Part shown: positions 6,478 through 44,246 of the stretch, one piece after another | Numbering within the stretch: the stretch's first letter is position 1 | How the letters are laid out: each line of letters opens with the position of its first letter | Assembly (NCBI GenBank): GCA_946965045.2 | Contig: OX337240.1 | Coordinates: 1,798,001-1,862,000 of the forward strand | Source: Epithemia pelagica | Lineage: Eukaryota; Protista; Bacillariophyta | Direction: 5' to 3' | Length of the DNA stretch: 64,000 nucleotides | Made by a program: the position numbers and the translations under genes | The notes under the pieces: model-generated | What the model saw: the letters and a program-made list of their open reading frames with translations, nothing else | What the model was told of the DNA's origin: nothing | The model's database searches: none

Positions 6478-6537
6478 ATAGATGAGCTGCTCGACCGTCT
6501 TGTAGAACAGCCCGAGGAATGACCTCGGGTTTCGTTG

Positions 6538-7779: not shown

Positions 7780-7807
7780 GGCAGACGATGGACGTGTGCT
7801 GTCTAAA

Positions 7808-8581: not shown

Positions 8582-9603
8582 CTATATTTTCTTCCTCAGG
8601 GACTTTGTTGTGATGCGGCCACAGGCCCTGGGCTGGTTTTGAGAGCATCCTTGGCCTTGGCCACCGCACGTCCCCCTACATTGTTCCAAGGAAGAAGAGC
8701 CAAGGCGGCTGCTTCTAGTTCTTGTGCACCCACCACTGCCAAATTCTTGCCCGTGGCGTTGTCGCACGCTTTGGTAACAATTTGGTGAATGACCTCCATG
8801 CCAAGTTGAGACCGCCATGCAAAGTTGACCGAGGTAGGCCATACCCTCTACGGAGATAACCTTATCAGCTTCATCCCTTTGCTGGTAGAGGAGCTGGTAC
8901 AGGTAAGGATACCAAAATTGCTGGTCGAAACGTTGCTTTGTATCCAGCTCAAAAAAGGTCTTGAAGTTCTCGTCCTTGGCAATAGTGTCCAGGACGTATT
9001 GGCTACCCATCATTTGACTATAGTACTGAGAGCCCTCCGTCTGGCGGAAACCGCCACAGAGCAATCCAATGAACTCAGAGATAGATTCAGAGAAGATTAC
9101 GGTCATGGCCACAGGGGCGTTCTCGTCACCCTGCATCCCCTTTTCTTGTAAGATGCTTTCAAGATGCTGCGCAATCTGATCCTGCAGAGCCTTCATGCCG
9201 CTCTTGTTCGGATCAAAACCAACGGGTAGCACATAAGTGAGTCGATCATTTTCTGCAACATGTCACGAGAAGGGTGCACATGGCATGATACACAATCCCA
9301 TCCGAGAACATTGTGATGAAGACAAGTGTGGTCAGACCCATTTGCTCGGTGACTGTCAAAGTATGCCACCGTGTGGAACGTACCTCCCAATCCCGTATAC
9401 TTTATGGGTGTCACGGCACTCAAGATGCGTCGCAAGGAAGTCTGTTGCAAGGCTTGCTCAAGGCGTAGGGGGTGGTTACCACGAGTAGCACCTCTCAGCT
9501 TGGGTCCTTGCTCTTCTTCTCTTTCCATCCCCCAACAAGGGCTGGACCAGAAGGCACCCAGGAGGAGAAACGACAACAAGAGAGGAGACATCTGTTTGAC
9601 CAT
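8582..9603 (-). CDS. Secreted hypothetical protein, 2 exons, probable frameshift near the 3' end
   Basis: Signal peptide MSPLLLSFLLLGAFWSSPCWG; plausible intron 9383-9253 (GTACGT...TTGCAG) joins ORFs 9193-9603 and 8582-9232; the more protein-like C-terminus (MEVIHQIV...) lies in another frame (8596-8799). Confidence 0.55.
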
Positions 9604-11319
9604 GCCAAAAACGTTGACGATGAAATTATGGCAGCAGTCAACTATCCTGCGATCTGCGACGTGTTGAAAATTGAATGAGCTCTGTAAGCATAATTCGACA
9701 TATTTTTCACCGGCAAATAGAGGTGTTGTTTGGTTTTCAACTGTGGGTTTAGGTTAAACTGTGTTTTCAGATTCAAGATTGCTTTCAGAAATTGTGAGAT
9801 CGGCAGCAAAACAGAATGTGTGAAAAGAGAGCAGAATCGGCGCGCGTGACGTACACTATAAAAATGCCAGACTGTAGAAATCTAGTGTGTGAATTACACA
9901 TTTGAATACCTGTTGATCTCAAGATTGAGACCACCCCAATCCATCATCCTCCTTTGGCAATTGGCATGGTACATGGTGCATCTCCCGACTTCCAACACGA
10001 AAACTCCCACCATCCAAAAGGTTTCGAGTTTCTCGAGTCTCCAACACTGGTTTGCCTAGTTATACTCCGACCAAAACTACTTGACGTGGTGGTTTCGGTC
10101 GAGACGAATGATCTGCTTGGATTGTCTCAAGACCCAGATCCACTCAAGACAGAGATGAGGAACTACACAGAAGTTTGGCTGCATACCGTGTCACTTGGTG
10201 GGTGCTTTTGTCTGGGCATCTGTTCTTGTTCTACAACGAGACAACCGTCTGCGGCGAAAGCAGACTCTCAAGAAAGGAAAAAAGCACTTGTCTCTCGAAA
10301 CATGGAGCTGTAAAATACAGCCGTGCATTATCAATGACTCCTTCCATGCTGCTTCTGACTATCTGACTCCTAGCTAGAGTACCTAGCTAGGTAATAGAAG
10401 TACTTAGGAGTAGCTATGACAAAACCGTTCACCATACTAGAGAGTTATCGGGTTTTTCTTCTCACCCCTCCCGATATGAGTTTCTTTCAGCTTCCTATCT
10501 TTAAAACAAAGTCATCCATTGGAAGAGAAGATAGAAGGAACTGCATGGTTGAGTAACCATAAAGTTAGGAGCACCTCACTGGGACGACGTTGAGCATCAG
10601 ATAGAGATCACATAGATAGCATATTTTAGTCCATTCAGTAAAATGACGTCACACGGGAATCGGGAACGCTTTTATGCGGCGCACTCTCTCATTGCAATTG
10701 TGGGAGGAATAGAATGTCAACCTTTTGGTGAGCACAAGGATTGCAGTGACAAGAACAAAGAAACCAAGTGCCGAGGCCAAGCGAGAGGACACCCACAACG
10801 AGTTGGCTGATCGGACTGGATGAGCCAGTTGTGAATCGCGAATGAAACGATTATAACGCTCATTTTTCTTTGAGTCGTTACACTCATCTTCCCGGAAAGT
10901 GAGAGCAACGACCGAGACGCTGCAGTTGCTGTTAAGCAGATATTAGATGCAAAAAACGGATCTGAGGCACACGCTCTCGTTTGGCTTCCACCTGGAGGAA
11001 GCAGGAAATAGTTGGAGGTCTCTTTGAAAACTCAGAGGGAATAGTGTTGCTGTATTCTTGTTTACTCATTGGTCAGTTCTACCGCAAGATCCATTTTTTC
11101 TCAACTCAGTGGTTTGCTTCGAATGTGATCCAGCTCAAGAAACTATACAGAAATAAGAAGTTGTATCTTGATAGCTCATTGTAGAGAAGCAGATATTTAT
11201 TCCAAGCGAGGTATCAGAGGCTGGCGATTCAAGAAATACAACTTTCTCAATTTCGCACCATTACAAGCTCAGAAACAAAGAAACAGCCCGCGACGAGGAC
11301 TTTTCGGATATCCAGCCAT

Positions 11320-14300
11320 TTGAGCCTTGAGTTGACCCATGTCCATGATAGCCATAACAACCAAGATTTGGGGTCTTCCTCCTTGGAATATTGGGGCGAC
11401 GGAACCTTGCGATCCATCGGCTTCTTTTCCTTTACCGGTCGTTTGGTCCTTCATCATCATAATATCAAAGAGAAAACAAAAGAAGATGAGGAGAAATCTA
11501 AAAACATGCACATGTCCAGGGACTTCCGCCCTGAGCACAACACCGATCCATTGAACAAACCTGTCGAAGTCAACCAAACGGACGAATCTCTGCAAGTACA
11601 ACGTGCTGAGCGAGCGTCTCAGTCTCAGGCCCCGCCGACTCCAGTTCCACCCAATGTTGTCAACCTTACAAGTGATGTGCAATGTCGTGACCTCGAGCTC
11701 ACAAAATCGTTGAGTGTTTTGGATGACGCAACGGCAAGCCGCTTTTCGGATGATATGGTTGGTGATAAGGACGGCGACGACAGCGGAGAGGAAGAAGAAA
11801 AGTCGAGCAAGGTGGAAATGCTACCAACAATCGAAGGTGCGACTCGGTTGGCAGTCGACATGGATGGTAAATCTCCTCTCAAGACTTCAAATTCGTCTTT
11901 GGAGAGGGTCGATCCCCCATTGTCGTTCCAACAAGCAACAGCACAGCTCAGAACGACTCCTCCAAGTGTTTCTACCGAGGTTGCGGCTTCTCCCCCGAAG
12001 TTTCTTGAGACGATGCCTTCCGCAAAAGAAACAGAGCCATCAGCACCAGCGACTCCAACCACAGTGTGGCGCAACAAGGTCAATCGTGTACGTCAAGTAT
12101 TGCGCGCCACCAATCCACCGCCGCGTGTCACCATTCCGGAAAGTTTGCGTTGGAAACGAAAGGAATCCCGAGATGCGTCGTCTACTGTGTCGACCATGAC
12201 TCCTTCTACAACGACGCGCTTGCACCAGTTATGTGCCTTGCCCCACGTTACCCTGGATGAATTGATGGAATGCACCAATCATTTTCCTCAGGCTATTACC
12301 ACCCTGGATACTCAAGGACGATATCCGCTGCATATACTGGGTGATAATGAAACTCTCATTACATCTTCCTTATCAGGACGTGATGTTGCCACCATATTTG
12401 CTGGACATTTGATGAATGAGTTTCCTTCGGCTATCATTGTGACGGATCACGATGGATTTTTGCCCTTTGCGCGTATCGTAGCTGACTGGATTGATTGGGC
12501 ACATGATAGAGAGAAGCCAGAGGATCAAGAACAAGAAGCCCAAGAGCAGCGTTCCCGGCAACAACGGCCACAGTCATCAAAACATGACACTAAATTTACC
12601 GGTGATGACGGAAGTGCCGATCGTGACAGTTCCAACATGAGCTCTGGTTTGAATACGGAACGCCAAACATTCGGTGTAGTCACCCGCCTCACCTCTAAAA
12701 ATGAATATTACAGTACCCGTAAAGGTCTGTTTTCAGGACGGGGAAGCCACCACTCCACTGGGACCCGACGTACTAGCAATGCAAATGACAGTGATGGTTG
12801 TCACAGAGCCTCTCCTAGTGCTGGAAGAACTCAATATTGGCAGTTGGGAAGCTTCCACCGACGACTTTTTCCTCGCCTGGAATCGTGGGAAGAGGTGGAG
12901 TGGTGTTTTGCAATGATGTCCACAGCATTTGATATTTTGACTCGTTCTCAAAACGCTTCTTCAGCAACAACGTTTCCATATACTTCTCTCAGTCCTCCCG
13001 GCACCCCCACCCGACGAAACACGACCAGAGTCCAGCAAGTGCCGTATGCCAATGCATTAGATTCGTCGCAGTCATCATCAGCACATCATTCTTCGGTCTG
13101 CGATCAACAGAATTCGCAGAAGGACCCGACGCGATCGACGAAGAAGGCGATACCGAAGAGAAATGGTTCTACGGTCTTTGTGGAAACCATTGCACAGAAG
13201 ATGCCCAGGCTTCTCTCCACAGTTTTCTTGGTGGATGATGACGGAAGGAACTCTAGAGAACGCCTGTTGGAAACGTTGATTGTTCGTCGCTTATTATTGT
13301 GTCCTCAAACGGTTGGAATGTGGATTATCGAAATGCTTAATCATGGAGGCTCGCCAGCCAAACGGGCGGTGGATTACCTGGAGCTTGTGTCACGTGTATC
13401 TGTGGAAGACTATACAGGAAGTTACGGGGACGTTCATTCTAGCGACATGGAATCCTTCAATAAAGACCGACAAGATGTCTTTGAAGCTGTCGGATCGTTG
13501 AGAGGCACGATTGCTTCCTTGATCTCACTTGATTTGAGGGAAACGGAACGAGCAGCTTCCAGCGCTGTAATTTGGCATACCATGAATCAAAAACTGAGCC
13601 GTCCATTTGTGCTGGGTCTTGTTCTCATTGATTTGCTTCTTCATGTGATATTGATGGTGGCATTCCGTCCCATTGCGAACCTTTCTGCTGAACTTACTCA
13701 ACTTGGTGTAGACCCATCCGGAGTGGTTTATCTCATTTCGATACACTATCTGTTACTGAAAAGTTGCGAAGCATGGGTGCTCTTCACTGTATCGCCTTTG
13801 GCGCTTCGAGCGTACTTCGGCAACATGTGGACACTCTTTGACTCGGTTTGAACAATTTTAACCTTATGGGCTACTGTCTGGTACGAGAAATCCAAGGAGG
13901 GCGAATACCACAATGGTCTGAATGCTCTGGTGACTGGCATATTGTGGGTGAAAGTACTAGGCTTTCTTAAAGTCGTCAACAAGGAAATGTCTACATTCAT
14001 TCTCGCTCTGACACAGATTCTTCATGATATTCGTTTATTCATGGTGTTGCTGGTGATATGCGTAATCATGTTCGGGGACATGTTTTACATTGCAATCAGC
14101 ACAAAAGACGATGGTGCATTCTGCAAAAATATCGAAACGGCCGAGGACTTTGACTCTGGAACCATTGATGACTTTTGTGATTCGACATTTGCTTCATATC
14201 TTCGAGTTTATGTAAGTGCGTTGGGAGACAACCCCACATAAGTGATCAAGAGCAACTGATTTTACATGCCTCTTTTTTCTGAACAGAGCATGCTTCTGGG

Positions 14301-15267
14301 CGACTTTGAACTAGATGATCTGACCGAGACAAGTGGGACTATTGCTCTATTCATTATTTTCACTGTATTTGGTGTGATCATTCTGCTTAATGTGTTAATT
14401 GCCATAATTTCGGACTCGTATGAAAGAGCGACCATGAGCGGGACGCTGCTCTTCGGACGTGCTCGAGTTTTGTACGTGGCACAAAACGAAGCCTTGGAGA
14501 GATTTCTACAACCTCGTGGTCAACCCGGTTCCACCTCGGCCTATGCGGCTCTTGATACTGAAAACAGTCGCCACAAAAAGGCACGTCAAGCGACGCGATG
14601 GACGATGCTCCTTGCCATTGTGGGAACGGCCATTTATGCATTGTTGTTTATGGTGGGATTATGTATTACCTTGGCACAAAACGAAAGTTGGTTCAGCTTT
14701 TGCCTCGGTAAGTTGTCATGCATAATGGAGGATGTTCACGCGAGGACTTCACACTTCTCTTGACACTCATTACTGCTGGGTGGACTTATCCTATGCCTGT
14801 AGCACTTGGTGTTGTTCTCGTTTTGCTATGTGCTCTCTGGGTTGTCGTGACCTTCATACTGGACGGAATCCTTCGAGATTTACTTCCAGAGGCAGCGGAG
14901 CGTGTCTACGACTTGATTGGTACCATAAACAATGCCATTGTACGTGTGATCTCCAATTTCTTATTTGGGTTGAACAAACAAAAGGTCCCAACAATTGGTG
15001 CCAATGGAGCGACTGAGGAGGAATGGAATGGTCGTGTCAAGTATTTGGAGACTGTTTTGGAACGGTTGGTTGCTGAGACTAAGGTTGAACTCAAATCTGA
15101 GATATTAGAAATGAGAACGGTAAGTGTGCCGTTAAATCATTCACGATACTGAAGACAAAAATTGATTCATACTTTCGTTGACAAAGTGTTCCTCACACAG
15201 CTTTATTGATATAAAACAGGAGGTTCAGGAAATTCATGAGCACGTAACGACGACATGGGATAAATAG
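11320..15267 (+). CDS. Ankyrin-like repeat, TRP/polycystin-type cation channel; 4 exons; one in-frame TGA at 13849-13851
   Basis: Ankyrin-like motifs (GRYPLHIL, DHDGFLPF); multiple TM helices; pore/S6 MLLGDFELDDL...IILLNVLIAIISDSYER; GT-AG introns 14212-14286, 14708-14802 and 15120-15219 keep the frame; stop TAG at 15265-15267. Confidence 0.8.
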
Positions 15268-17456
15268 TTCCTCGATACGATGCAGTGGTGGTTGGTGGTG
15301 AGATTGTGATGAAGTGAGATGCAGTCGTAGCCATGCTATTTGCGGAGGAATGTTAGTATCCTATGAACTATTGATACCAAGAGAGCACGGACTGACACGA
15401 CTGTGGAGATAACTGAACACTTGATTGCGGGAAATTGAGGATATTCTTTGTCAGCAGCTTATGCTGCGGCGACTTGGCAAAAGAATATTCATTCTTAATG
15501 GCGGTGGAACAATGAGATTGCAGATCGTGATGCTCACCTCAAATTCAGAATTGATGATCAGCATGTTAAAGAATCAACAGGGCCCTTAATATGAATGACA
15601 TACGGGAACTGTTCGGAGGAGAAAAGGTAATGATCTGGTGGGAAATTCCCAACATATCTTGCAATGAACAACGGCTGTATCTGAAGCCTGTCTGTATGTT
15701 GTTATCAAGAGAATCAATGGCACTAACACTTGCCTATCATCGGTCACAGATTCGGTCACTTTAACTTCGAGGCTTTCTAAAGAGATGAAATGCGTTGACC
15801 CATCTTCCTACCTAGTCATGGGTGATGAGTTGCGAGTGGATCAGAACAACCGTCGTGGCACTGAGCGTTTTGCGTGATTGTGAGCTACATTGGTATGTTT
15901 GCTGCCAAATACCAAGCACCTCGTCTTTCGACCCAAACACCTGTTAATCTAACATCTTCTCAACATCATCTCTGTTCTTGGCATCATGATTACCAAGAAT
16001 GCCAGTGATCGCCCCATGGTGTGCCCAACCATTCAAAGGCGTTGTATCGTCTCCCGGAAGACTGACAGAAGACAGAAACGCTTGGCTCATTCCAGAATGC
16101 GAATTCGCATACGTTGCACTCAATGCCTATCCCTTTTGCCTTTTGTTCCAGATGTTTCTCGCACTCGTACTGGAGTTCAAGTCACGCTCTGTTTCTGAGT
16201 TAAGATCTATTCATTTTTTTACGGCCTATGACCGTTTAGGATCTGTAAGCAGTAAACAGTTGTTTTTCGACAACAAAGTGCTTCTTTTATGTTCTGACGA
16301 ACCTCTGCACAGAGACCAGTGACCCAGCAGACTTTGTGTCTACCTACAGCGATGAGGATGGGAATTGGAAAGGGAGGTTGGAGTTCCGCTATGGCTGATC
16401 GAAGTCCATAGCTGCGGATAGGATAGAGGGCTCTAGGAGTACAATAGTGGTGATGATCTTGTCGACCTACTCCTAGATCTAGAGGAGTAGTCCACAGTCC
16501 ACAAACAGGACAAACCACAACAGCCAAAGGGTCACCCCCCCAAAAGTCCCCAGTCGTGCCCTCTTTTCCACACAGCACACAGCATTTAAGGCGCATTCAC
16601 CCATTCACATTCACATCAGAGAACTAGGTACTCGTACGTACGAGTACTCCTACGAGTAATACTCGTACTCGTAATAACTAATGGATCTTACCCATGACAC
16701 TAGCATTGAGTATCCGATGACCATTGCATCTGGGGGCATGAAAGTTTTAATATTCCCCCAAATGCCGAGATGCCTGGGCATAAAGTCGATGAATCTTGGG
16801 GCAATATGGATCTGTGATGGTAGTTATGGATGTGTCATCACTTGAAGCTCAGTAACCATTAAGGAAAGGAAAGACCACAAGACGGTAGGGAATTTCTGGT
16901 ATTCCCTTAACTACTCCTAATAATGTTTCTTGTTTCTGGCCGTCGAACAGCATAGACGTGGTAGCTTCATAGACCCCCACTCCGCACTCGCCATCTCCAT
17001 TCTCCATTGTAGAAAGAGAGTAAAGACAGACGGAAACTGCGGACACCAAAACCCGAACCATTTCATCTTCATGGGATCCACAATAAATAATAATGGGACA
17101 AAAAAAGAGAGAACAAGAAGGCCGTCTGGGTCTGGGGTCTGGGTCTGGGTGTGTGGAGTCTGGAGTGTGGTGGAGAGCGGAGAGCGGAGAGTGGAGAGTG
17201 GAGAAGAGTGGGATTGGACCTTGACCCGTGACTGTGACTGTGGTCCGTGTGGCGCTTTTCCGCCTCTCTGTTTTTGTGTTGGTCTTTTGGCCGTCACGGC
17301 CATGAGGAGCAACGACTCTGAGCAACCGACCAACATGGCCGAAATAGCACTCCAGATGTTTCTAAAACAACTTAATGTTTATCTTTAAAATGAGCAGCTA
17401 GGATCATCAAATTGTCCAAAAACTGGTAGGCACCATGTTTCGCTTCGTCTAAATCT

Positions 17457-18110
17457 CTAGTAGTAGGTTTGGGCACTTTGTCCTCGTTGTGCCATGCTGT
17501 TGTTCCCTTCTGCTCGTCGGCGCATGATTTCTGCTTGCCATTTAAAGAGTTCATCAAAGGTGAATCCCAATCCAACTCCTCCATTTTCTCCAACGCCGTT
17601 ACCAGCGCCCGCAAAATGTCCATTTCGTTCGTGATGGGGTGCATTCTCAATCGGACTGACAGTCTTGCAACTGGGGCAAAGTACATAGGAAGCGTCCTGA
17701 ATGCAGCAGAGTTCTAACGAGCAGGCAAAGCAAACAACTGGGATATGAAAATCATGTTCGATGCAACTCCACGTTTCTTGTGCTCCACGAAGTCGAGCAT
17801 AGACGCCTGGTCCCAGTTCCACCATGGTGTCATTCGATGGATTCCGTGCCGGACGATGTGGTTGTGGCGGACCTCCTCCACCTCCTCCTCCATAGGCAGC
17901 TTGTTTCCGGGCTATAACATCATCGTAGGCTGAATCATAAAAGCTGGTGGGTGCATGATTTCTCCGACCTGCGGGATGCCGGCGATTCCGCTCCATCATA
18001 CAATCGTCTAGGGCAGACTGTCGCGGTGGTTGTGGCGGCTCTCCCATATTTTGTCCTCGACCTTGATGTTGATGGTGTGGGTGATGGTTGTAATAGTTGT
18101 CGTAGCTCAT
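17457..18110 (-). CDS. Hypothetical protein with Cys-rich zinc-binding-like motif
   Basis: MSYDNYYNHH... low-complexity N-terminus, then LGPGVYARLRGAQETW...CFACSLELCCIQDASYVLCPSCKTVSP (CxxC...CxxC) and GGVGLGF. Confidence 0.7.
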   Translation of the reverse strand: MSYDNYYNHHPHHQHQGRGQNMGEPPQPPRQSALDDCMMERNRRHPAGRRNHAPTSFYDSAYDDVIARKQAAYGGGGGGGPPQPHRPARNPSNDTMVELGPGVYARLRGAQETWSCIEHDFHIPVVCFACSLELCCIQDASYVLCPSCKTVSPIENAPHHERNGHFAGAGNGVGENGGVGLGFTFDELFKWQAEIMRRRAEGNNSMAQRGQSAQTYY

Positions 18111-19151
18111 GGTCGTGTGTTGTTCTTGTAGTTGATCTTGTACAACAATGCTTCGATGTTCGATGTGACGAGATGCGAAATAATGGTCCGAACACAAACA
18201 CAAACCAGGGGGAAGGGGGGCAGTCTGCAGTCTGCGCACAGCGCATCTGGTTTCTGGTCGCGCCCCTTTACTTCCATGTTGAACACCGCGGGATCTAATG
18301 GTGAAAGGAGCAAAGTATGATGTTTTTCGTGCGGAAACTTTGGCAGTGACTCCCAAATTCCTTTGGGGGCGACGGGAGTTCTGTGTGGGAGTCGAGACAT
18401 GTGGTGGGAGTCGCGAGATTTGTCCTGAATCTGAGTCCCGTGGGTGGGGTCGAAAGCTGTCGAACGCCTCCTTTTCAGCTTAGTACTTCGTACGAGTACA
18501 ATACAAAATCCTCCATGGAGTGGTCGTACTCGTATGTCCGGCAGTTGTCACACAGGGCTATTAAAGCCATAAAGTCCCTACCAATTGCAGCCTCCAGTGC
18601 AAACGAGCGCGGAGGTACGACTACCGCTCAAAATAATCGAAATTCTGTGAGGAAACAGAAACCATCAAAGAGTAAGTAGTAAGTCAACTGACAAAATATT
18701 TTCTCTACTGACGACAGTCTTTTCAGTTGACACTTGACACTCTACTATTGTATTGTACTCGTACTGGTACATCAAAGGGCATAATAATATATTTTATTAT
18801 TACAGGTTCCAGGTTCCGGTTGTCTTCCGGAGATGACAGACAGCAGACAGAGTCCCCCAGTCCCCATTCCCCCATTATTATTATTGGGCCACAAAACTCG
18901 TTGGGAAATGGGATTACACAATCACCACACAAAACACAAAACCGAAGCTTGAGGCAAGAAACAACACTAGAAAATGAAAGACCTCAAGAAAGCGCATGTG
19001 GAACAGAAGATGATGATGGACAGACGACACGAGATGAGAGATGAGAACAGAGCTGTTAGAGGTTAGAGGATCTTGAGCTGCGGAATTTCAGGCGTTCTTT
19101 TTCGGAAATAGATTTCGCACTTCGTCCATCCTTACTTTCTTTGTGTCTTTT

Positions 19152-19301
19152 GGGCCCCCCGACGCCTCCTCCCATATTCGAACAGAGTTTTCCTGTCTAC
19201 GTAGCTTCGGATTCTTTGCTGGTAACCTCAAGAGTTTTAATGGTGTGTTCACCACCAGTTCGAACTTGAGCCTCGTGGACTTTCAATCCCCCCAAACCCA
19301 A
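19152..19301 (-). repeat. 3' terminal direct repeat (150 bp) of the YR retrotransposon
   Basis: 149/150 identical to 27952-28101 (gagttttcct vs gagtttccct). Confidence 0.95.
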
Positions 19302-19748
19302 TGCACGCCGACCTTGGGCCCTTCCTCGTAGCCATCCAAGCAAGAGATCCCTCGCAGCCAAAGATACAAGGCGAACAAACAGATGAAACAACTCAATAAC
19401 TTAAACAAATTAGATTCTCGCGATCATAATCATATGATTAGATCGTGTTGTGGGGGGAAGGCGACACCTTCTCCACTCAGGGCCAAAGCCGGTGTTCTGT
19501 AACCAGCTAAGGGTACCAATTTATCAGCCACGGGTAAATGAACCATGTCGAGACTCCTGTTTGTTCCCCTGGATTCCCCCAACGCAATCAGGTAGCACCA
19601 TGCAATCGCAAAGGGGGCAAGGGACAGCAGACTGTGACGGAACAAACCCATAAACCAACAATCAAGAAGAGAAAACGCCTTGCCATGTCGGCTTTCTCTC
19701 AACTTGTAGGAACCAAAACCCCCTCCACCAAGAATCTCGACTGGGCAA

Positions 19749-21378
19749 TCACATGGACCGAGTGTACCTCAATAACGGACCCACAAGCAAGTTTAGATCG
19801 GCATACATGTGGTCTATCCTGGCTCCTGGCTTGTTTGTGCCCGCATTTTCTTTCGTTCTCCAGCGGTTGACTGTATCAACGTCTGGAGTGGCAACGCCAA
19901 TTTCTTTGGCTCTCGTATTTGATCCTCTCCGGAAGGATCGAAAGACTGCGTATCTTGATATTATGTCCTCTTCGTCTTTGATGGCAGCAAGCGGGAATGT
20001 CGTCCAAAGCTCTTGACGTGATGGGGGTCCCATTGCGATTGAGCATCAATGGTCCCGACCATCGTCCTATCTCCTGGGACAGGCAAACTGCCCGATTTAT
20101 CCATCGTCTTATCTTTATTCCACTGCTGGTCTCGTCGCAACATGGCAAAAGGTGTGAGCGTTCGATGTGCTCTCCTTTGAACTGCCCCCACAACCCAACC
20201 ACAATACAGTTTCGTTGCCTGTAAAGATCCATGTATTTTACAAGCGCATTCAAGTCCAGCAGCAAACCCTCCGGGCCTCGTAACGACAAAACGTATGACG
20301 TAGCAAAGAAGGTGCCAGCAAGAACAAGGAAGAACGCGTCGTGTTCTTCTCGGTTCTCCACAATCTCCTCTTCGATTGAGCCCAACAAGGCTTGCATTAG
20401 TTCACTGGTGGTCACAGCCTGATCAGGTCGCCAGTCTTGGCCCATTCGACGTCGACATCCTTCCACAAATCTGGAGAACCATAACGAACCGCTCTCATCC
20501 TGACCCATTCGGGAAAAGGCCTTTCCATTGTTGTCTGTAAGCACCAACGGATGGCCGTTTACCAACGTAGAAGCCGTTGCCCTCACATGATTTGAATAGG
20601 TAGAGCAAAATTTTCGTATTGTATCAAACTGCTTTCTGTCTCGATGATACTTTCCTTGATCCAACGACGCATCCAGCATTAGGAAAGCCACATGATAGCC
20701 ACAATGGTCGTAATTTGGGAAAGGACCAGGGCTTCTGAAGGGTCCGAATGGAATCCCAACTTTCTTGGATTTTTCTATCATCATTTTTGCATTCCTCGTG
20801 TTCTGCATGACCGTACTCGTAGCCCTGCTCCAAAAGGCGTCCAAGTTCATTTGTCTTATGCAGGTGAGAAGGTACTGGTCTTTTAGGTTTTGCGAGTCAG
20901 GCTCCTCTTGTCGCAGTTTCCGGAACACGCACAAATCGCATTCGAACGGCGTGACCATGTGATCGCCGGCTCGTGCTTGATTGAAATCCTCCCGACGGTC
21001 TCTGGTGCGACTCCTCCAAGTCTCAGCCACCAGACGGTCTTGATCCGATTCTTCTACCATGGTGTTCCGCGACGCGACGTAGAACCGGTCATCGTCGCTC
21101 AAAGAATAACACCCTGGACACCATGCGCTCCGACATGGAGCGCATTTTCCAACACTGTACGCAAAATTTGCGCAGAAGATCCCGTCCCCCCACGGGATCT
21201 TCTTTCCACATTTTCCGCAATTTCCGATCCATTGAGAACATCTTCGGTGTTCCTCGGAGTTGCCATGGCTGTGACCTGATAAAAGGAAAAACAAAACGAT
21301 TAGAGGTTCGAAGTTTCCTACAGGCCAAAACGAAGTTCCCGCTGGAATTTCCGGCACAAGGTCGCAAGCCTTGTGCAA
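19749..21378 (-). pseudogene. Tyrosine recombinase, split by a frameshift near 20000
   Basis: LSLRGPEG (first catalytic Arg) in ORF 19876-21378; FRSFRRG, NRWR and DHMY (catalytic Tyr) in ORF 19749-20033; N-terminal CxxC clusters. Confidence 0.8.
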
Positions 21379-35997: not shown

Positions 35998-36884
35998 CGT
36001 GGTAGATAGGATGCTGGTATGTCAGTTCGGGAGAGACCAGGTAGTCGGGGGGTTTCAACAATGAGGCAAAAAGTCTTGGTGGTCGTTCAACCCTGTAATG
36101 GAACAATCAATCAATCAAGAGGTCTTGGGAACAAAGGGGAGAAACAATGACAAGAGGAAGCGCGACGACGACAACAACAAGGACGACGGCGTGCCAACGA
36201 GACAAGGTTTATTCTGGAGTAAAGTATGAGAGTGCGTGTTTTTGAAACAAGAACTGGATCTATTATGAGTTCAATCGAGTGCTCTTTGACACCAACTCAA
36301 CAAAAAATCTTTTTTTGGGAGTGTTCCCTCCATGCGAACTCGTTTGCTCCTCCTCACACATGTCCATGTCCCGGCTGTGCCTCCCTTCTCTTGACACCCT
36401 TCTACAATATGGTTTGTTGACTGTTGACACAGCAAGACATATTTGTTTATATCATTGATGGATGGGAAGAAGAGAAGCGGAGCCAGGGCACTTCTCGTTT
36501 CCTTGACACCAGCATTCGATTTTTGCTTCTACCAACAAGCGTCTCCTCGATCAAAAATTGTGCGTCTCGTACTCGTACCTCGTACGTGAGCCGCGTGTGC
36601 ACGCACATGGCTCGTTCGCTTCGTCTTCTCGCATTTAGCAATGCTGTCCTGACTCCCGATTAAACACACCCAGTTTTTCAATCCCATTTCCTTTTCAAAC
36701 TCCGGGTACCCTTCCAATCACGCACGCCCCCCGGCCAAGGGCTAGTCACCTATGTATTCCAAAGAGCATTGGATATATAGACAAACAACCCGCTTTCATC
36801 GTGACCATAAAATTGGCCACCCCGCGCTGGACAAATTCAAATCCATTTCCAGTTCAAAAACCGTCACATAGTTTGTATCCTATC

Positions 36885-39800
36885 ATGGTGGACAATGACG
36901 CTCAGCCCCTATCTGAGGATAACCTGGTTCCTATCCAAGATCTAACACAACAATACCTGGATGATCTTTTTGCATCATTGGACAAAGAATGGCACTCGCC
37001 ACTACAATTCCAAATGCATGTAGGCAACAATTGTGCCAACAGTGACACAACTGTGGAACTGGACATTTGTGCATTCTTTGGCCGACTACAAGCAGCGAAT
37101 GGCATCAAGAGCAAGTACGCATACTTTGATCGTAGCACATACCCTCCTCTCCAATCTGCAGATGAACTCTCAAAGGAAGGCAATTCAATGGCAAATCTTC
37201 ACCAAGATTTAGTTACAAAATCTTTAACATCCGGTTTTGTTCTTGTGAGCAACGGTAACTCCACCAAGAATTCTGCGCTTGCTTCCCGTAAACACTTCCC
37301 TGAAGGAAGTTCCCCTCCCTTTTTTTCAAGAACCTTTCGATGTGAACGTTACAGAGTCTACCGAAAGCGTAAAGCAAGTGATGAACCTTCCATTCAGCAA
37401 TACCGTGGCATTTCTCTGCACAACGATCAACGAGCTAATAGTCGAGGACCGGAGGGTAGGAAACAAGCGCGTAAACGCATCACCAACCGAGCACTACATC
37501 GTGATCATACTTGCTCTTTTCATTTCACGGTCTTTGCCAATTCCAAAGGTTTCTATATCACCAGAGTCGCCGGGAATGCATGTCACTGCAACCACATGAA
37601 GAAGATGTCATCTGACATTCCATTTCGCATTAGGAACTTTACTGCTCAACAACGCAAACGTGCGGGTGAACTTGGTAATGCATTTACAGGACCAGCGGCT
37701 GGTCGCAACTACTTCCACGCAAATGGCAATTTAACCATTACTCGTGATCAAATGCGATATGCTTTTCGTGTAACTGACACAACAGGAATGTACCACTTTG
37801 ATGGAATACATGCATCTGCAGAAGCCGTAGTTGAATGGCTTCGTACTGCCGAAAGTTTAAGCTACTGCATTTGGGGAGCGCGCCCAGACAGTGTTACCGA
37901 TGCTCATATGGAACGGCAGTCAGGGTTAATCTTCAATGAGAACAAAGACGAAGATGGGAACCACAGTGTTTCAGACTTGACTCACTTTTGTCAAGAGATC
38001 CTCCATGAATATACTACTGAAATGGAAAATCTGAAACTTGATGTTGACCAGAATATGTTCATTGCTTGTGCTTGGATCACGAATAAGGAGCGGCGAATGT
38101 TTCGACTGTTTCCGCATGTACTGAAGATTGATGTCACCAAAGGAACAAATAGAGAAAACCGCCCCTTAATGACTGTGTCAATGCGCACGGCCTATGGAAA
38201 ATATCTTGTCATCATGCGAATGTTTCTATCCAATGAGAGAAGAACAACATTTCGATGGGTTTTCTGTATTGCTTTTCCGACTCTTCTTGGAACACAATGG
38301 ATAGCACGGGTCAAGGCAATAGTAACTGATGGAGACTCCCATGAAATTGAAGAATTGGAAGAATCGATGCGTCGATACATGCCACACTGCATCAGAATCC
38401 GTTGTGGCTGGCATATCATTTTCAAGGGTTGGAGTAGGCAGTGCTCCATTGAGGGAGCAATTCCACGGGAATACAAACGCACATACCGGCAATTTGCAAC
38501 CACTGTAAAGAAGTGGTGTTACTCATTCATGTATCCACGCTACTGTGAAAGTGAACAGGAACTCCACATCTCAAAATGTCTTCTTCTTGCCTTTGTTTAC
38601 TCCAGGCCTGTTCGCACTTTCTTGACCCCCCAGCTCCGGAAAGTTATCCATAACTTTCTTATTGGCTATGTCTTTGTTCACGACAGGCACTTGTGCTTCC
38701 ATTATCGTAAAGGAATCCGCTATTATGAAGAATCGACAAACAGTAGTCATGAAGGCACAAATCTTGGCTTAAAGGAACATTCTGCACCAGTGTTGGCCAA
38801 CAGAACTGTTGCATTCAATGCAGCTATGCTCAAGCTCCAGTCTGACATGGCCATTGATGAACAGATGCGTCGTGCGTCCTCGAGTGTAGAAGCAACGGCC
38901 ACCTGGACAAACCACCTTCCAGTCAACGGTTTTGTCACAGAATTGTGTCTTGATCTGGCAACAAAATCATGGAATTTCGGGAAGAACTATAGTGTCCGTC
39001 GTGCACCTGTCCCCTTTTCTCCATGGCAATGGCACGTTGTTATAAGCGACCCCTCTATTGTCAACAATGAAAAAAAACATTTGCTTCCTGTGTGGCATCG
39101 CACTCGATGTGTACATCTGAACAAAATGGGACGCCTGGAGTGCACCTGTATGTCTTTTGAACGACGCGGGATACCATGTGCTCACCAAGCAGCTGTGCTT
39201 ATGCACGAGTATCCTAGCTACAAAGGATTTACCCACCATGATGTGAGTATTGTGTGGTGGAAGAAACATGTCTTCCTTGGTCTCCGTGACGGGGATAACA
39301 ATGTTGATGAGTGCATCCAGCACTTGCTGGACAACGACATATCTGGACCTAAATTTCCCCTTCCCCTTCAAAATATAGATGGCTGGACAGAAGGCCCGTA
39401 CAACACGGGAGACAATCCCATCAAATTCAAACATCTGCACGTTGATCCAAAAAATAGTTGTGTCAACTATACAGAAGATCAAATACTGCGTGCTATCAAT
39501 ACATTTGGAGGAAGTCTTGTCTCAAATGCAACAGCAGCAACAACAACAACAAGGGAAAGGGAGATATGTCCTGATCCTGGATATCTGTCCCAAGAATGTT
39601 TTGTCACAAATGATGACATCACAAACAATGCTTACACAACCCAAATGCCAGCATTTCCTTCGTTTCCAGAAGAAAAAGAAGACTATGACACAGATGGCCA
39701 AGGCACGTACGACGCGCATTTCTCCACCCAGGAGAGTGAGGAGAATGAATTTTTCCTGCAGGCAATTGAAGAAGAAGCTGGGGAGCAAATGACAACACAA

Positions 39801-40055
39801 CAATTCATTTCATGTATTCGCGAAGAGGTTTCAGAACTACAGGATCTTTTCCGGTCTGGTAACTATGTCGCTTCTGATCACAATCTTTTATCCCATCTTG
39901 AGTCATTTCGCCAACTACGTCGAGACATACGCCGGAAAATGGCAGAACGGGGACATCACAACCAAGGTCAGGAATGGGTTTCAGCAAATGCTGAACAAAC
40001 CCAGCATAAACGTCGTTTCCGTGGTGCCACATTAGGTCTGACATCTTTCACCTAG
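36885..40055 (+). CDS. MULE transposase with SWIM zinc finger
   Basis: LKIDVTKGTN (D1), IVTDGD (D2), RCGWH (CxxH), SHEGTN (E); SWIM CTCMSFERRGIPCAHQ; FAR1-like N-terminal C/H cluster; uninterrupted ORF. Confidence 0.9.
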   Translation: MVDNDAQPLSEDNLVPIQDLTQQYLDDLFASLDKEWHSPLQFQMHVGNNCANSDTTVELDICAFFGRLQAANGIKSKYAYFDRSTYPPLQSADELSKEGNSMANLHQDLVTKSLTSGFVLVSNGNSTKNSALASRKHFPEGSSPPFFSRTFRCERYRVYRKRKASDEPSIQQYRGISLHNDQRANSRGPEGRKQARKRITNRALHRDHTCSFHFTVFANSKGFYITRVAGNACHCNHMKKMSSDIPFRIRNFTAQQRKRAGELGNAFTGPAAGRNYFHANGNLTITRDQMRYAFRVTDTTGMYHFDGIHASAEAVVEWLRTAESLSYCIWGARPDSVTDAHMERQSGLIFNENKDEDGNHSVSDLTHFCQEILHEYTTEMENLKLDVDQNMFIACAWITNKERRMFRLFPHVLKIDVTKGTNRENRPLMTVSMRTAYGKYLVIMRMFLSNERRTTFRWVFCIAFPTLLGTQWIARVKAIVTDGDSHEIEELEESMRRYMPHCIRIRCGWHIIFKGWSRQCSIEGAIPREYKRTYRQFATTVKKWCYSFMYPRYCESEQELHISKCLLLAFVYSRPVRTFLTPQLRKVIHNFLIGYVFVHDRHLCFHYRKGIRYYEESTNSSHEGTNLGLKEHSAPVLANRTVAFNAAMLKLQSDMAIDEQMRRASSSVEATATWTNHLPVNGFVTELCLDLATKSWNFGKNYSVRRAPVPFSPWQWHVVISDPSIVNNEKKHLLPVWHRTRCVHLNKMGRLECTCMSFERRGIPCAHQAAVLMHEYPSYKGFTHHDVSIVWWKKHVFLGLRDGDNNVDECIQHLLDNDISGPKFPLPLQNIDGWTEGPYNTGDNPIKFKHLHVDPKNSCVNYTEDQILRAINTFGGSLVSNATAATTTTREREICPDPGYLSQECFVTNDDITNNAYTTQMPAFPSFPEEKEDYDTDGQGTYDAHFSTQESEENEFFLQAIEEEAGEQMTTQQFISCIREEVSELQDLFRSGNYVASDHNLLSHLESFRQLRRDIRRKMAERGHHNQGQEWVSANAEQTQHKRRFRGATLGLTSFT

Positions 40056-40124
40056 TTTGTAAAACTCCCATAACAGATCTAAACAATATTGAGCGTTTGT
40101 TTATGCAACATATTATGTTTTACT

Positions 40125-41408
40125 TTAATGACTAGTTTTGTTCTTGGCAGCTGCCAAAATTGCTTTTTCATTGTCTGTGATAGAAATTGTGTTGTCGTTC
40201 TTACCCACCACTGCAGTCTTCAAATAGCATGTCAGACAAAAGATGTCATGTTTGGTTGCCCGCTTGGAGACACAATGGTACTCAAGAGGATTGAAAATGA
40301 TTATGTCGAGGTGTCGTAACGCCACAACTTGTCCATGTTCTGGGAAGACAAATTTAGCCAAAACTTCATCCTTGTCTTTGTTACTTGGTTCCACAAGCAT
40401 GACAACAGAAATGGACAGACCAAAGTCGTTGTCTGTATGGGCTTGAAGGAAAACGTTTCGTCCGAACGCAACAGAGGAGAAGAAATGTGTACTCTTGCCC
40501 TTGTGGGACCACAACTTGAATTCACCATTTCTTGCAGCGTTCTCGAAGGCAAAAGAATAAGACCAGTCGATCCATTTTTCCAGCTGTGTCTCAAGCTGTT
40601 TGATGAATTGTAAGATTACCCGTTTCTCCTTTGCTTTCAACTTAGAAAACTTTGAATCTACCAGCCCTTTTCTTCCCCGATTTGCATGGACACCAAGAGT
40701 GATGTAGTTTGTCTTGTGTTCATCACATCCGACATAACGTGACTTGCCACGTGATTGATGGTTGCACGTTGTCTCCAACTTCTCAAGAACATCAAGTAGG
40801 TTCTGTGTCACATTATCACTTGTTATAATTTGACGTGGCGGTTTGAGAAACACAGGAAGTTTCTGTTTATCTGGACGAAAGATACTTCCTTGGTCACCAG
40901 ACTCTCCAATAACTTTCCAGCTTGACAAGGAAACAGGGTGGGGGACATATGGAGTGCATTTTGATAGCTCCAGCGGACCATTGGTAGGGTCATTTGTGAA
41001 GACTAGGCAGAACTTGTGTAGAACAGAAGAAGAAATCTTCAAAGAATCAGGTGCTTCGGTAATCTCTTTCAATGCGTCTTCCTGCTTTTGTCTCTTCTTA
41101 TTCCGGCGATATCGTTGTGCAGAAGACCTTGGCATGGAAGATGCTTTGGCAACCAAAGCAGCAACTTGTGTCCTTTGAGAACATGGTTTGTTGGACTTGA
41201 AGACATGAAAAGCATTAGTAACATCAAAGCCTGTATGTTCTTCAGCTATGTTCTGCAGAATCTCATCCTGAGTTAATCTCCGTGCAAGCCCCCCCGTACT
41301 TTTGTTGGCATGTACATTTGAAGATGTACTGCCTAAGCACTGGGCGGTGAGAGCCTGACCATTATGGTCTGGTTCTAAACGACCTCCCTTGAGGGCTTGC
41401 TTGGACAT
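40125..41408 (-). CDS. TET/JBP-like Fe(II) dioxygenase with basic NLS-like segment
   Basis: FFSSVAFGRNVFLQAHTDND (HxD), FVFPEHGQVVALRHLDIIIFNPLEYHCV (distal His), LTCYLK; RYRRNKKRQK upstream. First ATG outside the array is 41408. Confidence 0.7.
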   Translation of the reverse strand: MSKQALKGGRLEPDHNGQALTAQCLGSTSSNVHANKSTGGLARRLTQDEILQNIAEEHTGFDVTNAFHVFKSNKPCSQRTQVAALVAKASSMPRSSAQRYRRNKKRQKQEDALKEITEAPDSLKISSSVLHKFCLVFTNDPTNGPLELSKCTPYVPHPVSLSSWKVIGESGDQGSIFRPDKQKLPVFLKPPRQIITSDNVTQNLLDVLEKLETTCNHQSRGKSRYVGCDEHKTNYITLGVHANRGRKGLVDSKFSKLKAKEKRVILQFIKQLETQLEKWIDWSYSFAFENAARNGEFKLWSHKGKSTHFFSSVAFGRNVFLQAHTDNDFGLSISVVMLVEPSNKDKDEVLAKFVFPEHGQVVALRHLDIIIFNPLEYHCVSKRATKHDIFCLTCYLKTAVVGKNDNTISITDNEKAILAAAKNKTSH

Positions 41409-41435
41409 CACCCACGACAAATCCTGATGTAGACA

Positions 41436-42850
41436 ACCAAAAAGACCCCCAATTTCAAAATCAAATCGCTTCTGAAGGACCCAATCAATCAAACCAAACA
41501 AGGTATTGTTAGAACCGTCTTGCAAAGGGCTTTCCAACAAGCCATTCAATTTGGAAATCCGACTTACATGTAGAAAGTTATCAAGGGTAGTAGGAGAGAG
41601 TGTTGGAACAGCCACCAAAAAGACCCCAAATTCCAAAATCAAATCGCTTCTGAAGGACCCAATCAATCAAACCAAACGAGGTATTGTTAGAGCCGTCTTG
41701 CAAAGGGCTTTCCAACGAGCCATTCAATTTGGAAATCCGACTTACATGTAGAAAGTTATCAAGGGTAGTAGGAGAGAGTGTTGGAACAGCCACCAAAAAG
41801 ATCCCAAATTCCAAAATCAAATCGCTTCTGAAGGACCCAATCAATCAAACCAAACGAGGTATTGTTAGAGCCGTCTTGCAAAGGGCTTTCCAACGAGCCA
41901 TTCAATTTGGAAATCCGACTTACATGTAGAAAGTTGTCAAGAGTAGTAGGAGAGAGTGTTGGAACAGCCACCAAAAAGACCCCAAATTTCAAAATCAAAT
42001 CGCTTCTGAAGGACCCAATCAATCAAACCAAACAAGGTATTGTTAGAGCCGTCTTGCAAAGGGCTTTCCAACAAGCCATTCAATTTGGAAATCCGACTTA
42101 CATGTAGAAAGTTATCAAGGGTAGTAGGAGAGAGTGTTGGAACAGCCACCAAAAAGACCCCAAATTTCAAAATCAAATCGCTTCTGAAGGACCCAATCAA
42201 TCAAACCAAACAAGGTATTGTTAGAGCCGTCTTGCAAAGGGCTTTCCAACAAGCCATTCAATTTGGAAATCCGACTTACATGTAGAAAGTTATCAAGGGT
42301 AGTAGGAGAGAGTGTTGGAACAGCCACCAAAAAGACCCCAAATTTCAAAATCAAATCGCTTCTGAAGGACCCAATCAATCAAACCAAACGAGGTATTGTT
42401 AGAGCCGTCTTGCAAAGGGCTTTCCAACAAGCCATTCAATTTGGAAATCCGACTTACATGTAGAAAGTTGTCAAGGGTAGTAGGAGAGAGTGTTGGAACA
42501 GCCACCAAAAAGACCCCAAATTTCAAAATCAAATCGCTTCTGAAGGACCCAATCAATCAAACCAAACGAGGTATTGTTAGAGCCGTCTTGCAAAGGGCTT
42601 TCCAACGAGCCATTCAATTTGGAAATCCGACTTACATGTAGAAAGTTATCAAGGGTAGTAGGAGAGAGTGTTGGAACAGCCACCAAAAAGACCCCAAATT
42701 TCAAAATCAAATCGCTTCTGAAGGACCCAATCAATCAAACCAAACGAGGTATTGTTAGAGCCGTCTTGCAAAGGGCTTTCCAACGAGCCATTCAATTTGG
42801 AAATCCGACTTACATGTAGAAAGTTATCAAGGGTAGTAGGAGAGAGTGTT
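41436..42850. repeat. Tandem array, about 8 copies of a 178-bp unit
   Basis: Near-identical short ORFs recur at exactly 178-bp spacing (41506, 41684 ... 42574); units are head-to-tail with no spacers. Confidence 0.97.
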
Positions 42851-44246
42851 TGAAAAGGAAGGAAAGGCTGTGAGAGTGGGTTTTTTGGCCCCTCTCATGC
42901 AACATGCAAGTACAAAGGTAGTAGGTGATTTTCTTTGGGAGACCGTTGGAAGAGGGGACAGTTGATACACGTGTCTTGACACGTGCCTGGAGCGGCAGCA
43001 TGGGGTGCTGACAGGCGTGGGAATGCAGATGGGGTCAGTTCTTATGCGACTGAAAGCGACCAAAAAACTGGGTGTGCTTAATCGTTTCTCACCTCCATGC
43101 ATGTCGGTCCCCCATAGAGAACAACCAGAGAAGGTTTGGGCATATGACAAAACTTGGGGCAGTAGTAAATATTTACTATGCCCTTCATACAGGCTCAGGT
43201 ATGCGCGACTGTTGGACATCCGCCAAAGGACAAAGTGCACGCCGGGCCTGGGGATGACGCACGCACGGGGGAGTTGGGGTTTGGTCTGATTTTTCCGATC
43301 GAGCTTTTTGCAACCGCCGACGAGGAGGATCCAACGTTCCCTCTGAACAAAGAGAACTCATTCAACGAGGCATGGTCACGGTCCTTACTTTCAATACTGT
43401 ATCTACAATCGATTATCTTCGGAATCGGCCGAGACTGTGCGCGATGGACCTGGGAAATGAGAAGGCTCTCGTTTCGAGGAACAATGCAACTGCAAATTGT
43501 GAGGCAATGGGGAGCGAGAACAATGCGTCCAAGCTCACCTCCTCATCCGAAATGTGAGACATAACGATACGAAAGGAAGGAGACGATATAAACAGGTTGT
43601 CTGCCTTGAAATTCATCATTGCATCAAAGGTCACAACATCTATTCTGTGACACGGTTTGACATGTTTGTATGTGGATGAGACGACCTTTGATGTCAAACT
43701 GCCGATTGTGAATCGGTCTCCGAAAAATCAAATGAACCAATGGAGACATGATTGGGAGAACCTTGTAGTATCCTTGTTCGGTCTCCGTCTTGGACGATCC
43801 ACCACTGGGTGCCAGTGCCACCAAAATGTGTCGTTGTAGTAGTACTTTGGGTGTTTGTTGTGGCCTCAAGGAATTTGCCTCAAGCATCCCGAACCCCGCA
43901 ACAAACCATGTGTCTCATATGAGAAGTGGTTCTTGTTCCAATGGTCGTAAGGGAAAGGCAAGGATTACATAGGAGGACTTCTTGCTCCTTCTACTAATCC
44001 TTTCGACTCTTATCATCCACATAGCAACAGTAGCGTTTTCATTTTCTGTACGCCCCAGAGTGTAACATACAAAATGTATTTTTGAAATAAACCAAAGATG
44101 ATGAGATAGACACGATAGGAGTTGTTTGTGATGTTGCGAATTCGGCGCAAGTCTCAATCAACTCTTGCTCTCATCAACTGTTGTTGATGAAGTAAGTGCT
44201 TTCCTGTCTTCCTCTGACGTTCGAATAGAGACAAGAAGAAAGCACC

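Follow-up and report, generated by a model that had tools for sequence, protein, structure and literature searches.

A Mutator-like transposon of the diatom Epithemia pelagica carries a TET/JBP-like dioxygenase gene and an upstream tandem array: a candidate self-encoded anti-silencing system

Results

Organization of the element and its copies

The window analyzed here is a stretch of 64,000 nucleotides from the diatom Epithemia pelagica (NCBI GenBank assembly GCA_946965045.2, contig OX337240.1, positions 1,798,001 to 1,862,000 of the forward strand), and all coordinates given below count from its first letter. Between 36652 and 43089 the window holds an autonomous, low-copy and recently amplified Mutator DNA transposon (Mutator-like element, MULE, or MuDR) with two convergent genes, one for a DDE transposase and the other, the open reading frame (ORF) referred to as ORF2, for a predicted TET/JBP-like dioxygenase. 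A tandem array lies directly upstream of ORF2 and the whole is enclosed by terminal inverted repeats (TIRs). The features of the element are as follows, with the basis of each in brackets.

36652–36678, forward strand: left terminus, ACTCC (5 nt, common to all copies) followed by the 22-nt TIR (four-copy comparison)
36885–40055, forward strand: MULE transposase gene, 1056 amino acids from the first ATG, uninterrupted (Pfam)
40056–40124, no strand: spacer of 69 bp between the convergent stop codons (ORF coordinates)
40125–41408, reverse strand: ORF2, 427-amino-acid TET/JBP-like Fe(II)/2-oxoglutarate (2OG) dioxygenase (AlphaFold2 model, Foldseek, VIA-align, 79 homologs)
41409–41471, reverse strand: 63-nt leader from the last acceptor-like CAG to the ORF2 ATG (junctions in four families; shares homology with the "exon-like" half of an array unit)
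41436–42854, reverse strand: tandem array of 8.0 x 178 bp, non-coding (Tandem Repeats Finder, 98% matches)
42855–43062, reverse strand: unique subterminal region from the array to the right TIR, a possible ORF2 promoter by inference only (conserved between copies)
43063–43089, reverse strand: right terminus, 22-nt TIR plus 5 nt (four-copy comparison)

An earlier annotation of the same letters, made by a model without database searches and termed here the sequence-only reading, had proposed an intact MULE transposase on the forward strand, and this is borne out by three Pfam domains above their curated cut-offs in an ORF of 1084 codons (36801–40055, forward strand; first ATG at 36885). These are PF21056 ZSWIM1-3_RNaseH-like (7.9e-12, 45.7 bits, cut-off 27.2), PF10551 MULE (3.5e-8, 34.2 bits, cut-off 27.6) and, C-terminal to the catalytic domain, PF04434 SWIM (4.7e-5, 23.3 bits, cut-off 19.6). 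The RNaseH-like/MULE domain occupies residues 399–540 of the ORF, at about 37995–38420, and the SWIM zinc finger lies at about 39132–39206. The element therefore has the RNaseH-like catalytic domain, the SWIM zinc finger and the TIRs bounding every copy that characterize the MULE superfamily, and its transposase is 97–98% identical to those of the copies L001 and L002.

The TIR pair at 36657–36678 and 43063–43084 matches at 21 of 22 nt, exactly as had been read from the letters, and it is the single such pair in the window (two matches at ≤3 mismatches against zero expected from 100 shuffles). Three further copies (L001, L002 and L015) are bounded by the same ends, so the inverted repeat is indeed shared. 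DNA similarity between the window copy and these three amounts to 96.5–98.8%, starting at 36651/36652 and ending at 43082–43089, and the flanks of the four loci are mutually unrelated. At the left junction all four copies read ACTCC+CGATTAAAC, while at the right junction the TIR is followed by TTTCT in the window copy and L015 and by GGATT, near to the reverse complement of ACTCC, in L001; the TIR of the L004 family begins with the homologous CCCTCCGAC. On the strength of this four-copy comparison, that is, the limits of similarity, the shared ACTCC and the homologous start of the L004 TIR, the boundaries of the element are set at 36652 and 43089, so that the earlier span of 36657–43084 keeps its TIR positions and has its ends corrected.

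The two genes converge with their stop codons 69 bp apart, against the 70 bp first reported, and this layout is repeated in L001–L005 and L015. Of the four near-identical copies, the window copy and L015 alone retain two intact genes; a frameshift interrupts the transposase gene of L001, and in L002 both genes are frameshifted. The copies are all equally distant from one another (98.5%), in a star-like arrangement with 35–36 private substitutions each, and were therefore derived from one burst. Three sequencing runs that contain the element consist of genomic DNA, with contigs of up to 509 kb, and read depth over the element in genomic DNA runs is about 3.5 times that of the flanks.

Fold and active site of ORF2

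The ORF2 frame is open over 40125–41666 on the reverse strand, with its first ATG at 41408. Its candidate iron ligands are H324 (40437–40439) and D326 (40431–40433), which form an HxD motif reading HTD, and H378 (40275–40277); K397 (40218–40220) lies in YLKTAVVG, and the basic stretch RYRRNKKRQK, which resembles a nuclear localization signal, is conserved across the ORF2 family. The search against Tet_JBP (PF12851) that had been suggested as a check gave no match for ORF2 and remained below threshold in six of 79 relatives (best E 0.0023), PF20515 likewise being sub-threshold in one of 79 (E 0.015), and a Pfam scan of 18 ORF2 relatives gave no Tet_JBP match above threshold. Because direct assignment of ORF2 to Tet_JBP by sequence failed, the fold comparison was relied upon.

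The AlphaFold2 model of ORF2 was built from an 18-sequence alignment and has a predicted template-modelling score of 0.80. In a Foldseek search of the PDB with this model, CcTet (E 3e-8), CMD1, TET2 and NgTet1 rank first and FTO comes next, and the AlphaFold-DB clusters that it matches are named Tet-like, JBP1/TET, thymine dioxygenase and KDZ-associated. Structural alignment with VIA-align gives Z-scores of 16.1 over 270 residues for TET2, 14.1 for CMD1 and 13.1 each for NgTet1 and CcTet, against 9.5–10.7 over about 190 residues for AlkB/FTO and at most 11.1 over about 170–200 residues for other 2OG oxygenases. The modelled fold thus resembles TET/JBP more than it does the remaining 2OG oxygenases, and a fold of another kind, which would have spoken against the sequence-only reading, was not found (TET2 at 16.1 versus AlkB/FTO at about 10).

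With TET2, NgTet1, CcTet and CMD1 the ORF2 model shares the double-stranded beta-helix with TET-type N-terminal elaborations (Z 13–16 over 220–280 residues), the HxD...H triad, an upstream Arg (R244 in ORF2) and an acidic residue after HxD. It differs from them in having only 9–13% sequence identity and in lacking a Cys-rich or CXXC domain. Across 79 homologs, which are 22–46% identical to ORF2 of the window, H378 and K397 are invariant and H324, D326, D328, R244 and S381 are at least 90% conserved. The HxD...H triad is therefore present, its residues having been mapped by motif position and not by residue-level superposition.

The TET signature comprises two 2OG-binding Arg residues, the second with an aromatic residue six positions on (TET2 R1261/R1896, NgTet1 R224/R289; PMC7854593). 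In ORF2, Lys397 stands in place of the Arg that binds the C5-carboxylate (TET2 R1896, NgTet1 R289; PMC7854593), and the aromatic and His/Arg base-stacking pair of TETs (PMC7854593) is not recognisable. As Lys397 replaces the second Arg and the R-x5-aromatic signature is missing, the co-substrate pocket of ORF2 would differ from those of TET2 and NgTet1. The designation "TET/JBP-like" is used because the Tet_JBP models are not matched and Lys replaces the second Arg: the predicted fold and the metal site support a TET/JBP-like dioxygenase, while formal TET/JBP membership is not established. Of the earlier claim of a TET/JBP-type protein, the fold and the HxD...H motifs have thus held and membership in the Pfam Tet_JBP family has not.

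As a separate observation, a contig of 149–151 nt from a "subsurface metagenome" metatranscriptome matches 40563–40711, within ORF2, with one mismatch; DNA carry-over is possible.

Linkage and distribution of the ORF2 family

ORF2 has 17 homologs in a collection of 5.8 billion proteins, the closest coming from one ENA assembly, and the atlas clusters nearest to it are Bacillariophyta; an exhaustive profile search yields a family of 1,542 cluster representatives at E ≤ 0.001. Three sister families in the same assembly (L003, L004 and L005) have TIRs of 45, 36 and 53 nt, respectively, each enclosing an array, an ORF2 and a convergent MULE transposase. Their ORF2 proteins are 45%, 43% and 38% identical to that of the window, and their transposases 53%, 24% and 41–58%; L003 is internally deleted and non-autonomous with its ORF2 still intact. 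The proposed co-occurrence of transposase, dioxygenase and array within the same TIRs is consequently found in four copies and three diverged families, which also gives the element the property of a TET-carrying transposon, namely a dioxygenase gene within the termini in multiple copies. The dioxygenase has belonged to the element for a long time, being enclosed by the TIRs in every copy and in each of the three diverged families. Since the three components co-occur inside the same TIRs, none of the outcomes named beforehand as fatal to the sequence-only reading was obtained; in particular, the repeated linkage to MULEs is not that of a single-copy syntenic host gene unlinked to them.

Beyond this genome, Plavaka transposases adjoin ORF2 homologs in L009–L012 and six metagenome contigs, Helitron/Helentron Rep-helicases do so in L016, L062, L067, L071 and L082, and DEAD/Helicase_C proteins of about 1,300 amino acids are further partners; distant MULE transposases co-directional with the ORF2 homolog occur in L025, L033 and L056. 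No Pfam domain was detected in the neighbours of the ORF2 homologs in L006, L013, L014, L017, L018 and L027. Among the contexts with at least 2 kb of flank, all 13 have a mobile-element or unannotated neighbour and none has a conserved host gene neighbourhood. The MULE-linked ORF2s of this genome form one clade (support 100/99). On a tree of 62 sequences the partner labels need at least five changes, against a shuffled mean of 11.3 and with none of 200 shuffles as low, and the association with MULEs has at least two origins, the second nested among Plavaka-linked genes.

Several of these loci have features of their own. L008 (positions 1–15984; ENA ERZ26165376) consists of three head-to-tail units of 5.76 kb, each with an ORF2 homolog of 288 amino acids, an ORF of 77 amino acids and a DEAD/Helicase_C protein of 1,327 amino acids, and may be a circular or concatemeric element. 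In L009 (2926–7489), L010–L012, L022 and L074, from marine or freshwater metagenomes, the TET-like protein carries an N-terminal fungal-type Zn2Cys6 DNA-binding domain and 51-amino-acid tandem repeats, and its gene is convergent with a Plavaka transposase. Rep-helicase genes with Helitron_like_N and PIF1 lie beside TET-like genes in L016 (2742–7508), L062 (39–6128; also with GIY-YIG) and L067 (439–4050), and thus parallel, outside fungi, the Helitrons of fungi that carry TET. The right part of L003, with the truncated transposase and the TIR, is duplicated 6.9 kb apart (12325–13993 and 19197–20865), and a PIF1-like helicase gene (Herpes_ori_bp/AAA_30) stands between the two duplicates.

CpG signature of the element copies

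The element has an observed/expected (o/e) CpG ratio of 0.64, compared with 0.86 and 0.88 for its 5-kb flanks, and a GpC ratio of 0.91. Taken over the window copy and L001–L005, the CpG ratio is 0.62–0.69 against 0.83–0.94 in the flanks, with GpC at about 0.9–1.0. No other stretch of the window is as depleted in CpG as the element; the copia and tyrosine-recombinase retroelements there have ratios of 0.89–1.0. When substitutions were polarised among three copies, C>T/G>A changes were found at 29 of 323 CpG positions (9.0%) and at 20 of 1,801 other C/G positions (1.1%), an odds ratio of 8.8 (Fisher p 1e-12). CpG depletion together with this enrichment of transitions is the signature left by deamination of 5-methylcytosine (5mC), and it is indirect evidence, from the sequence record, of CpG methylation of these element copies by the host. 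5mC is therefore a relevant substrate, and a 5mC oxidase would have an obvious use.

Moderately low CpG ratios are also found elsewhere in the window, at 0.78 over 8001–12000 and 0.77 over 16001–20000, the mean of the window being 0.86.

The tandem array upstream of ORF2

Tandem Repeats Finder recovers the eight repeats of 178 bp that had been described directly upstream of ORF2. Read on the ORF2 strand, the unit of the window array has GTAAGT, CTAAC at +55 and TTCAG ending at +96, and in the last unit the half that follows TTCAG continues into the ORF2 ATG. A period of 178–180 bp, with the array ending at the ORF2 start, is held in four families whose units are almost unalignable with each other. 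Each unit has GTAAGT and a pyrimidine-rich TTCAG that ends 95–96 nt further on in the window copy, L003 and L005 and 79 nt further on in L004; CTAAC at +55 is found in the window copy and L004, and ATAACTTTC stands directly before GTAAGT in three families. Between copies, 16 of 96 sites vary in the intron-like half and four of 82 in the exon-like half, as counted from the printed alignment. These sequence patterns suggest that the array could be an amplified ORF2 leader with a short intron, serving ORF2 either as promoter region or as a non-coding 5' leader that undergoes splicing, a reading that we hold to be rather unlikely in itself.

The number of units varies between copies (8, 6.7, 6 and 2). 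Internally the arrays are 98.3–99.0% homogeneous, and their consensus units differ by 3–8% between copies that are otherwise 1.5% apart; being homogeneous within and more divergent between copies than the rest of the element, the arrays evolve in concert. An array of structured-RNA or spliced-leader genes was considered and rejected, with no Rfam match at E ≤ 1 and a fold z-score of +0.69, as was a coding repeat in this genome, with stops in all frames within 1.5 units.

The 1.8 kb surrounding the start of ORF2 homologs holds about four times as many tandem arrays as expected (29 versus 7.5, p 2e-9, a count that includes some redundant loci), and because of this enrichment a tandem repeat immediately on the 5' side of the catalytic domain can be regarded as a recurrent property of the family, whatever the carrier. 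The environmental arrays have periods that are multiples of three in 18 of 21 cases (p 1e-6), and 16 of the 21 lie wholly in the ORF2 reading frame and encode N-terminal repeats. Only in this MULE lineage does the repeat take the non-coding form of 178 bp. The idea that the array is a target or promoter loses ground accordingly, the equivalent repeat being in-frame N-terminal coding sequence in those 16 environmental loci.

Many of the environmental repeats are a conserved module of 57–64 amino acids without a Pfam match (consensus approximately VERxSWGKSRCEQMCRFPNTGGLHRTSGDAPLETP), present two to four times per N-terminus of environmental TET-like proteins (L068:626–1312, L058:1254–1773, L082:6114–6449, L062:9144–9500 and L046:1733–2187). 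Homology of the 178-bp units of this genome to the module was rejected, since a hidden Markov model of the module scores the arrays no better than control DNA. In L004 a second, GC-richer array of 180 bp lies downstream of the non-coding 178-bp array, within the called N-terminus of ORF2 (10038–10511; repeats of 60 amino acids, 2.6 copies), and is possibly an intermediate between coding and non-coding repeats.

Discussion

Proposed mechanism and alternative explanations

The best explanation of the locus as a whole, to which we assign a probability of roughly 0.55, is a MULE that carries a TET-like enzyme acting on its own 5mC, with the array as a leader-intron. The ORF2 enzyme would be imported into the nucleus and would there oxidise 5mC on the DNA of the element or on DNA in general; silencing by CpG methylation would thereby be weakened and the transposase and the enzyme would remain expressed, as proposed for the fungal TET-carrying transposons, while the array would serve as a spliced, non-coding leader or as a promoter region of ORF2. 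Self-directed removal of 5mC is inferred from the modelled fold and the conservation of the metal site, from a linkage maintained over a long time, from the traces of past methylation and from the precedent in fungi. Nuclear entry of the enzyme and its oxidation of 5mC, whether in the element alone or in DNA at large, taken as a claim of its own, falls somewhat short of an even chance.

Several observations weigh against this explanation. Window ORF2 has no Pfam match at all, PF12851 Tet_JBP and PF20515 2OG-FeII_Oxy_6 included, and neither phmmer nor two profile searches with ORF2 or the family profile retrieved a TET among PDB sequences. The second 2OG-binding Arg is replaced by the invariant Lys K397 with no aromatic residue at +6, and the conserved Asp stands at His+4 and not at His+5 as in TETs. 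CpG decay is strong in the copies, so methylation has not been prevented over their life. The putative 82–83-nt exons of the array do not keep the frame, and a splice-like GTRAGT motif occurs in only three of the 21 environmental arrays. The sole RNA trace of the element is the short metatranscriptome contig within ORF2 mentioned above. Finally, no target-site duplication (TSD) was found in the flanks at seven element ends (window copy, L001, L002, L015 and L003–L005), alternative end definitions having been tried; the absence of a TSD of 8–11 bp is atypical for MULEs, despite the youth of the copies.

Some of these observations agree with a dioxygenase that serves the element by other chemistry, marking its DNA or aiding transposition instead of erasing 5mC. 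Thymine hydroxylation as by JBP, ascorbate-dependent hypermodification of 5mC as by CMD1, demethylation of N6-methyladenine as by CcTet, or modification of RNA or protein could all be considered. CMD1 and CcTet, whose activities are unusual, are among the best structural matches, Lys397 takes the place of the second 2OG-binding Arg with no R-x5-aromatic signature (compare PMC7854593), and continuing CpG decay is unlike what efficient removal of 5mC predicts. Set against this, TET2 is the top match by Z-score with the longest alignment, an Asp is conserved after HxD as in the cytosine-reading TETs, albeit offset by one residue, and the family is a target of CpG methylation, which supplies a selective rationale for 5mC oxidation; on balance we regard such other chemistry as unlikely. 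That ORF2 is a passively captured host gene, in the manner of Pack-MULEs, or a generic 2OG oxygenase without a role for the element, is highly improbable. MULEs are known to capture host gene fragments and ORF2 has no Pfam assignment, yet the full-length gene and its catalytic residues are kept in four families at 38–46% identity, each within its own TIRs, and ORF2 is intact even in the internally deleted L003. In other genomes its homologs are carried by Plavaka, Helitron and helicase-type elements, the 13 well-flanked contexts include no conserved host gene neighbourhood, and the fold match is specifically to TET/JBP.

The array could also be read as a cis-regulatory or chromatin element of nucleosome length that co-evolves with ORF2 and is not a spliced leader: a promoter or enhancer, a nucleosome-positioning satellite, or a platform bound by the enzyme or the transposase, analogous to the VANDAL motifs bound by VANC. 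A period of 178–180 bp maintained in four families with nearly unalignable units, the variable copy number combined with concerted evolution, the enrichment of arrays 5' of ORF2 homologs irrespective of the partner transposon and the ATAACTTTC conserved in three families are all consistent with it. Nevertheless, most of the environmental repeats (16 of 21) encode the N-terminus of the enzyme, so that what recurs may be a repeat in the protein rather than a target in the DNA, and Pfam detects no DNA-binding domain in window ORF2; we consider this reading of the array possible but doubtful. More speculative still, and in our estimation quite unlikely, is that the TET-like gene and its 5' repeat constitute an "epigenetic counter-defence cassette" able to travel between elements, which in diatoms and other aquatic eukaryotes would have passed among those of the MULE, Plavaka, Helitron and helicase types, the nucleosome-length, non-coding array acting here both as spliced leader or promoter and as the site of enzyme action. 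If true, such a cassette would be a catalytic, self-targeted analogue of VANC acting on the CpG methylation laid down by diatom DNA methyltransferases (DNMT).

Relation to known systems and significance

DNA transposons of fungi that carry TET/JBP genes were reportedly described by Iyer et al. in 2014. In fungi, TET/JBP genes occur in ten DNA transposon superfamilies, with transfers between them (Kojima 2025, PMC12730594): Kyakuja, Dileera, Zisupton, Plavaka, EnSpm, ESTA, hAT, Harbinger/PHISTA, IS3EU and Helitron. The role proposed there for the transposon TET is escape from 5mC silencing (PMC12730594). The present element resembles these in having a TET/JBP-type gene beside a transposase inside the termini and in belonging to a gene family that moves between superfamilies. 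It differs from them in host, being found in a diatom with relatives in other aquatic eukaryotes, and in superfamily, MuDR/Mutator being absent from the fungal set; moreover, ORF2 belongs to a separate sequence family, fails the Tet_JBP models, has Lys for the second Arg and is accompanied by a 5' tandem repeat. PMC12730594, which covers fungi only, gives no TET-carrying MuDR/Mutator and mentions MuDR just for VANDAL and SET cargo. In the literature searched no TET/JBP cargo was found for diatoms or Mutator elements, and an Ectocarpus survey of transposable elements (TEs) is likewise without TET cargo. The combination had been put forward as undescribed; this stands for the MuDR/Mutator carrier and the non-fungal host and does not stand for TET/JBP genes in DNA transposons as such, which were already known in fungi.

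Within the Mutator superfamily, maize MuDR (mudrA/mudrB) likewise pairs a transposase with a helper gene, convergent from the two ends. MURB of MuDR is not an oxygenase, and MuDR has TIRs of about 215 bp and TSDs of 9 bp, as against TIRs of 22–27 nt and no detectable TSD here. The Arabidopsis element VANDAL21 (Hiun), also of the Mutator superfamily and cited in PMC12730594, encodes the accessory protein VANC, which is thought to undo the methylation silencing of its own element and goes with family-specific tandem motifs. VANC is a non-enzymatic, sequence-specific DNA-binding protein, whereas ORF2 has a predicted oxygenase fold and no DNA-binding domain detected by Pfam; the two are likened by architecture only, an accessory gene with a family-specific array. 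Oomycete MuDR and HarbingerS elements with a SET histone methyltransferase, reported by Kojima and Jurka in 2014 (cited in PMC12730594), are also stramenopile transposons with chromatin-modifying cargo; the SET cargo acts in histone lysine methylation, in contrast to the DNA-base oxygenase fold of ORF2.

Diatoms dominate ecologically among algae and have CpG-methylated TEs, and to our knowledge no TET pathway has been reported in them. A TE-encoded TET/JBP enzyme is the clearest candidate for an enzymatic counter-attack of transposons on silencing by DNA methylation. The element presented here is a compact and intact two-gene system with sister families, deleted derivatives and arrays of varied length, which opens the way to tests of own-5mC oxidation and of the role of the array, and its CpG-decay signal offers a read-out, obtained from sequence alone, by which TE families that possess the enzyme could be set beside those that lack it. 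Overall, with the fungal precedent known, the TE-encoded TET-like enzyme found here would extend this strategy to Mutator elements as a superfamily and, among hosts, to diatoms and further eukaryotes of marine or freshwater habitats.

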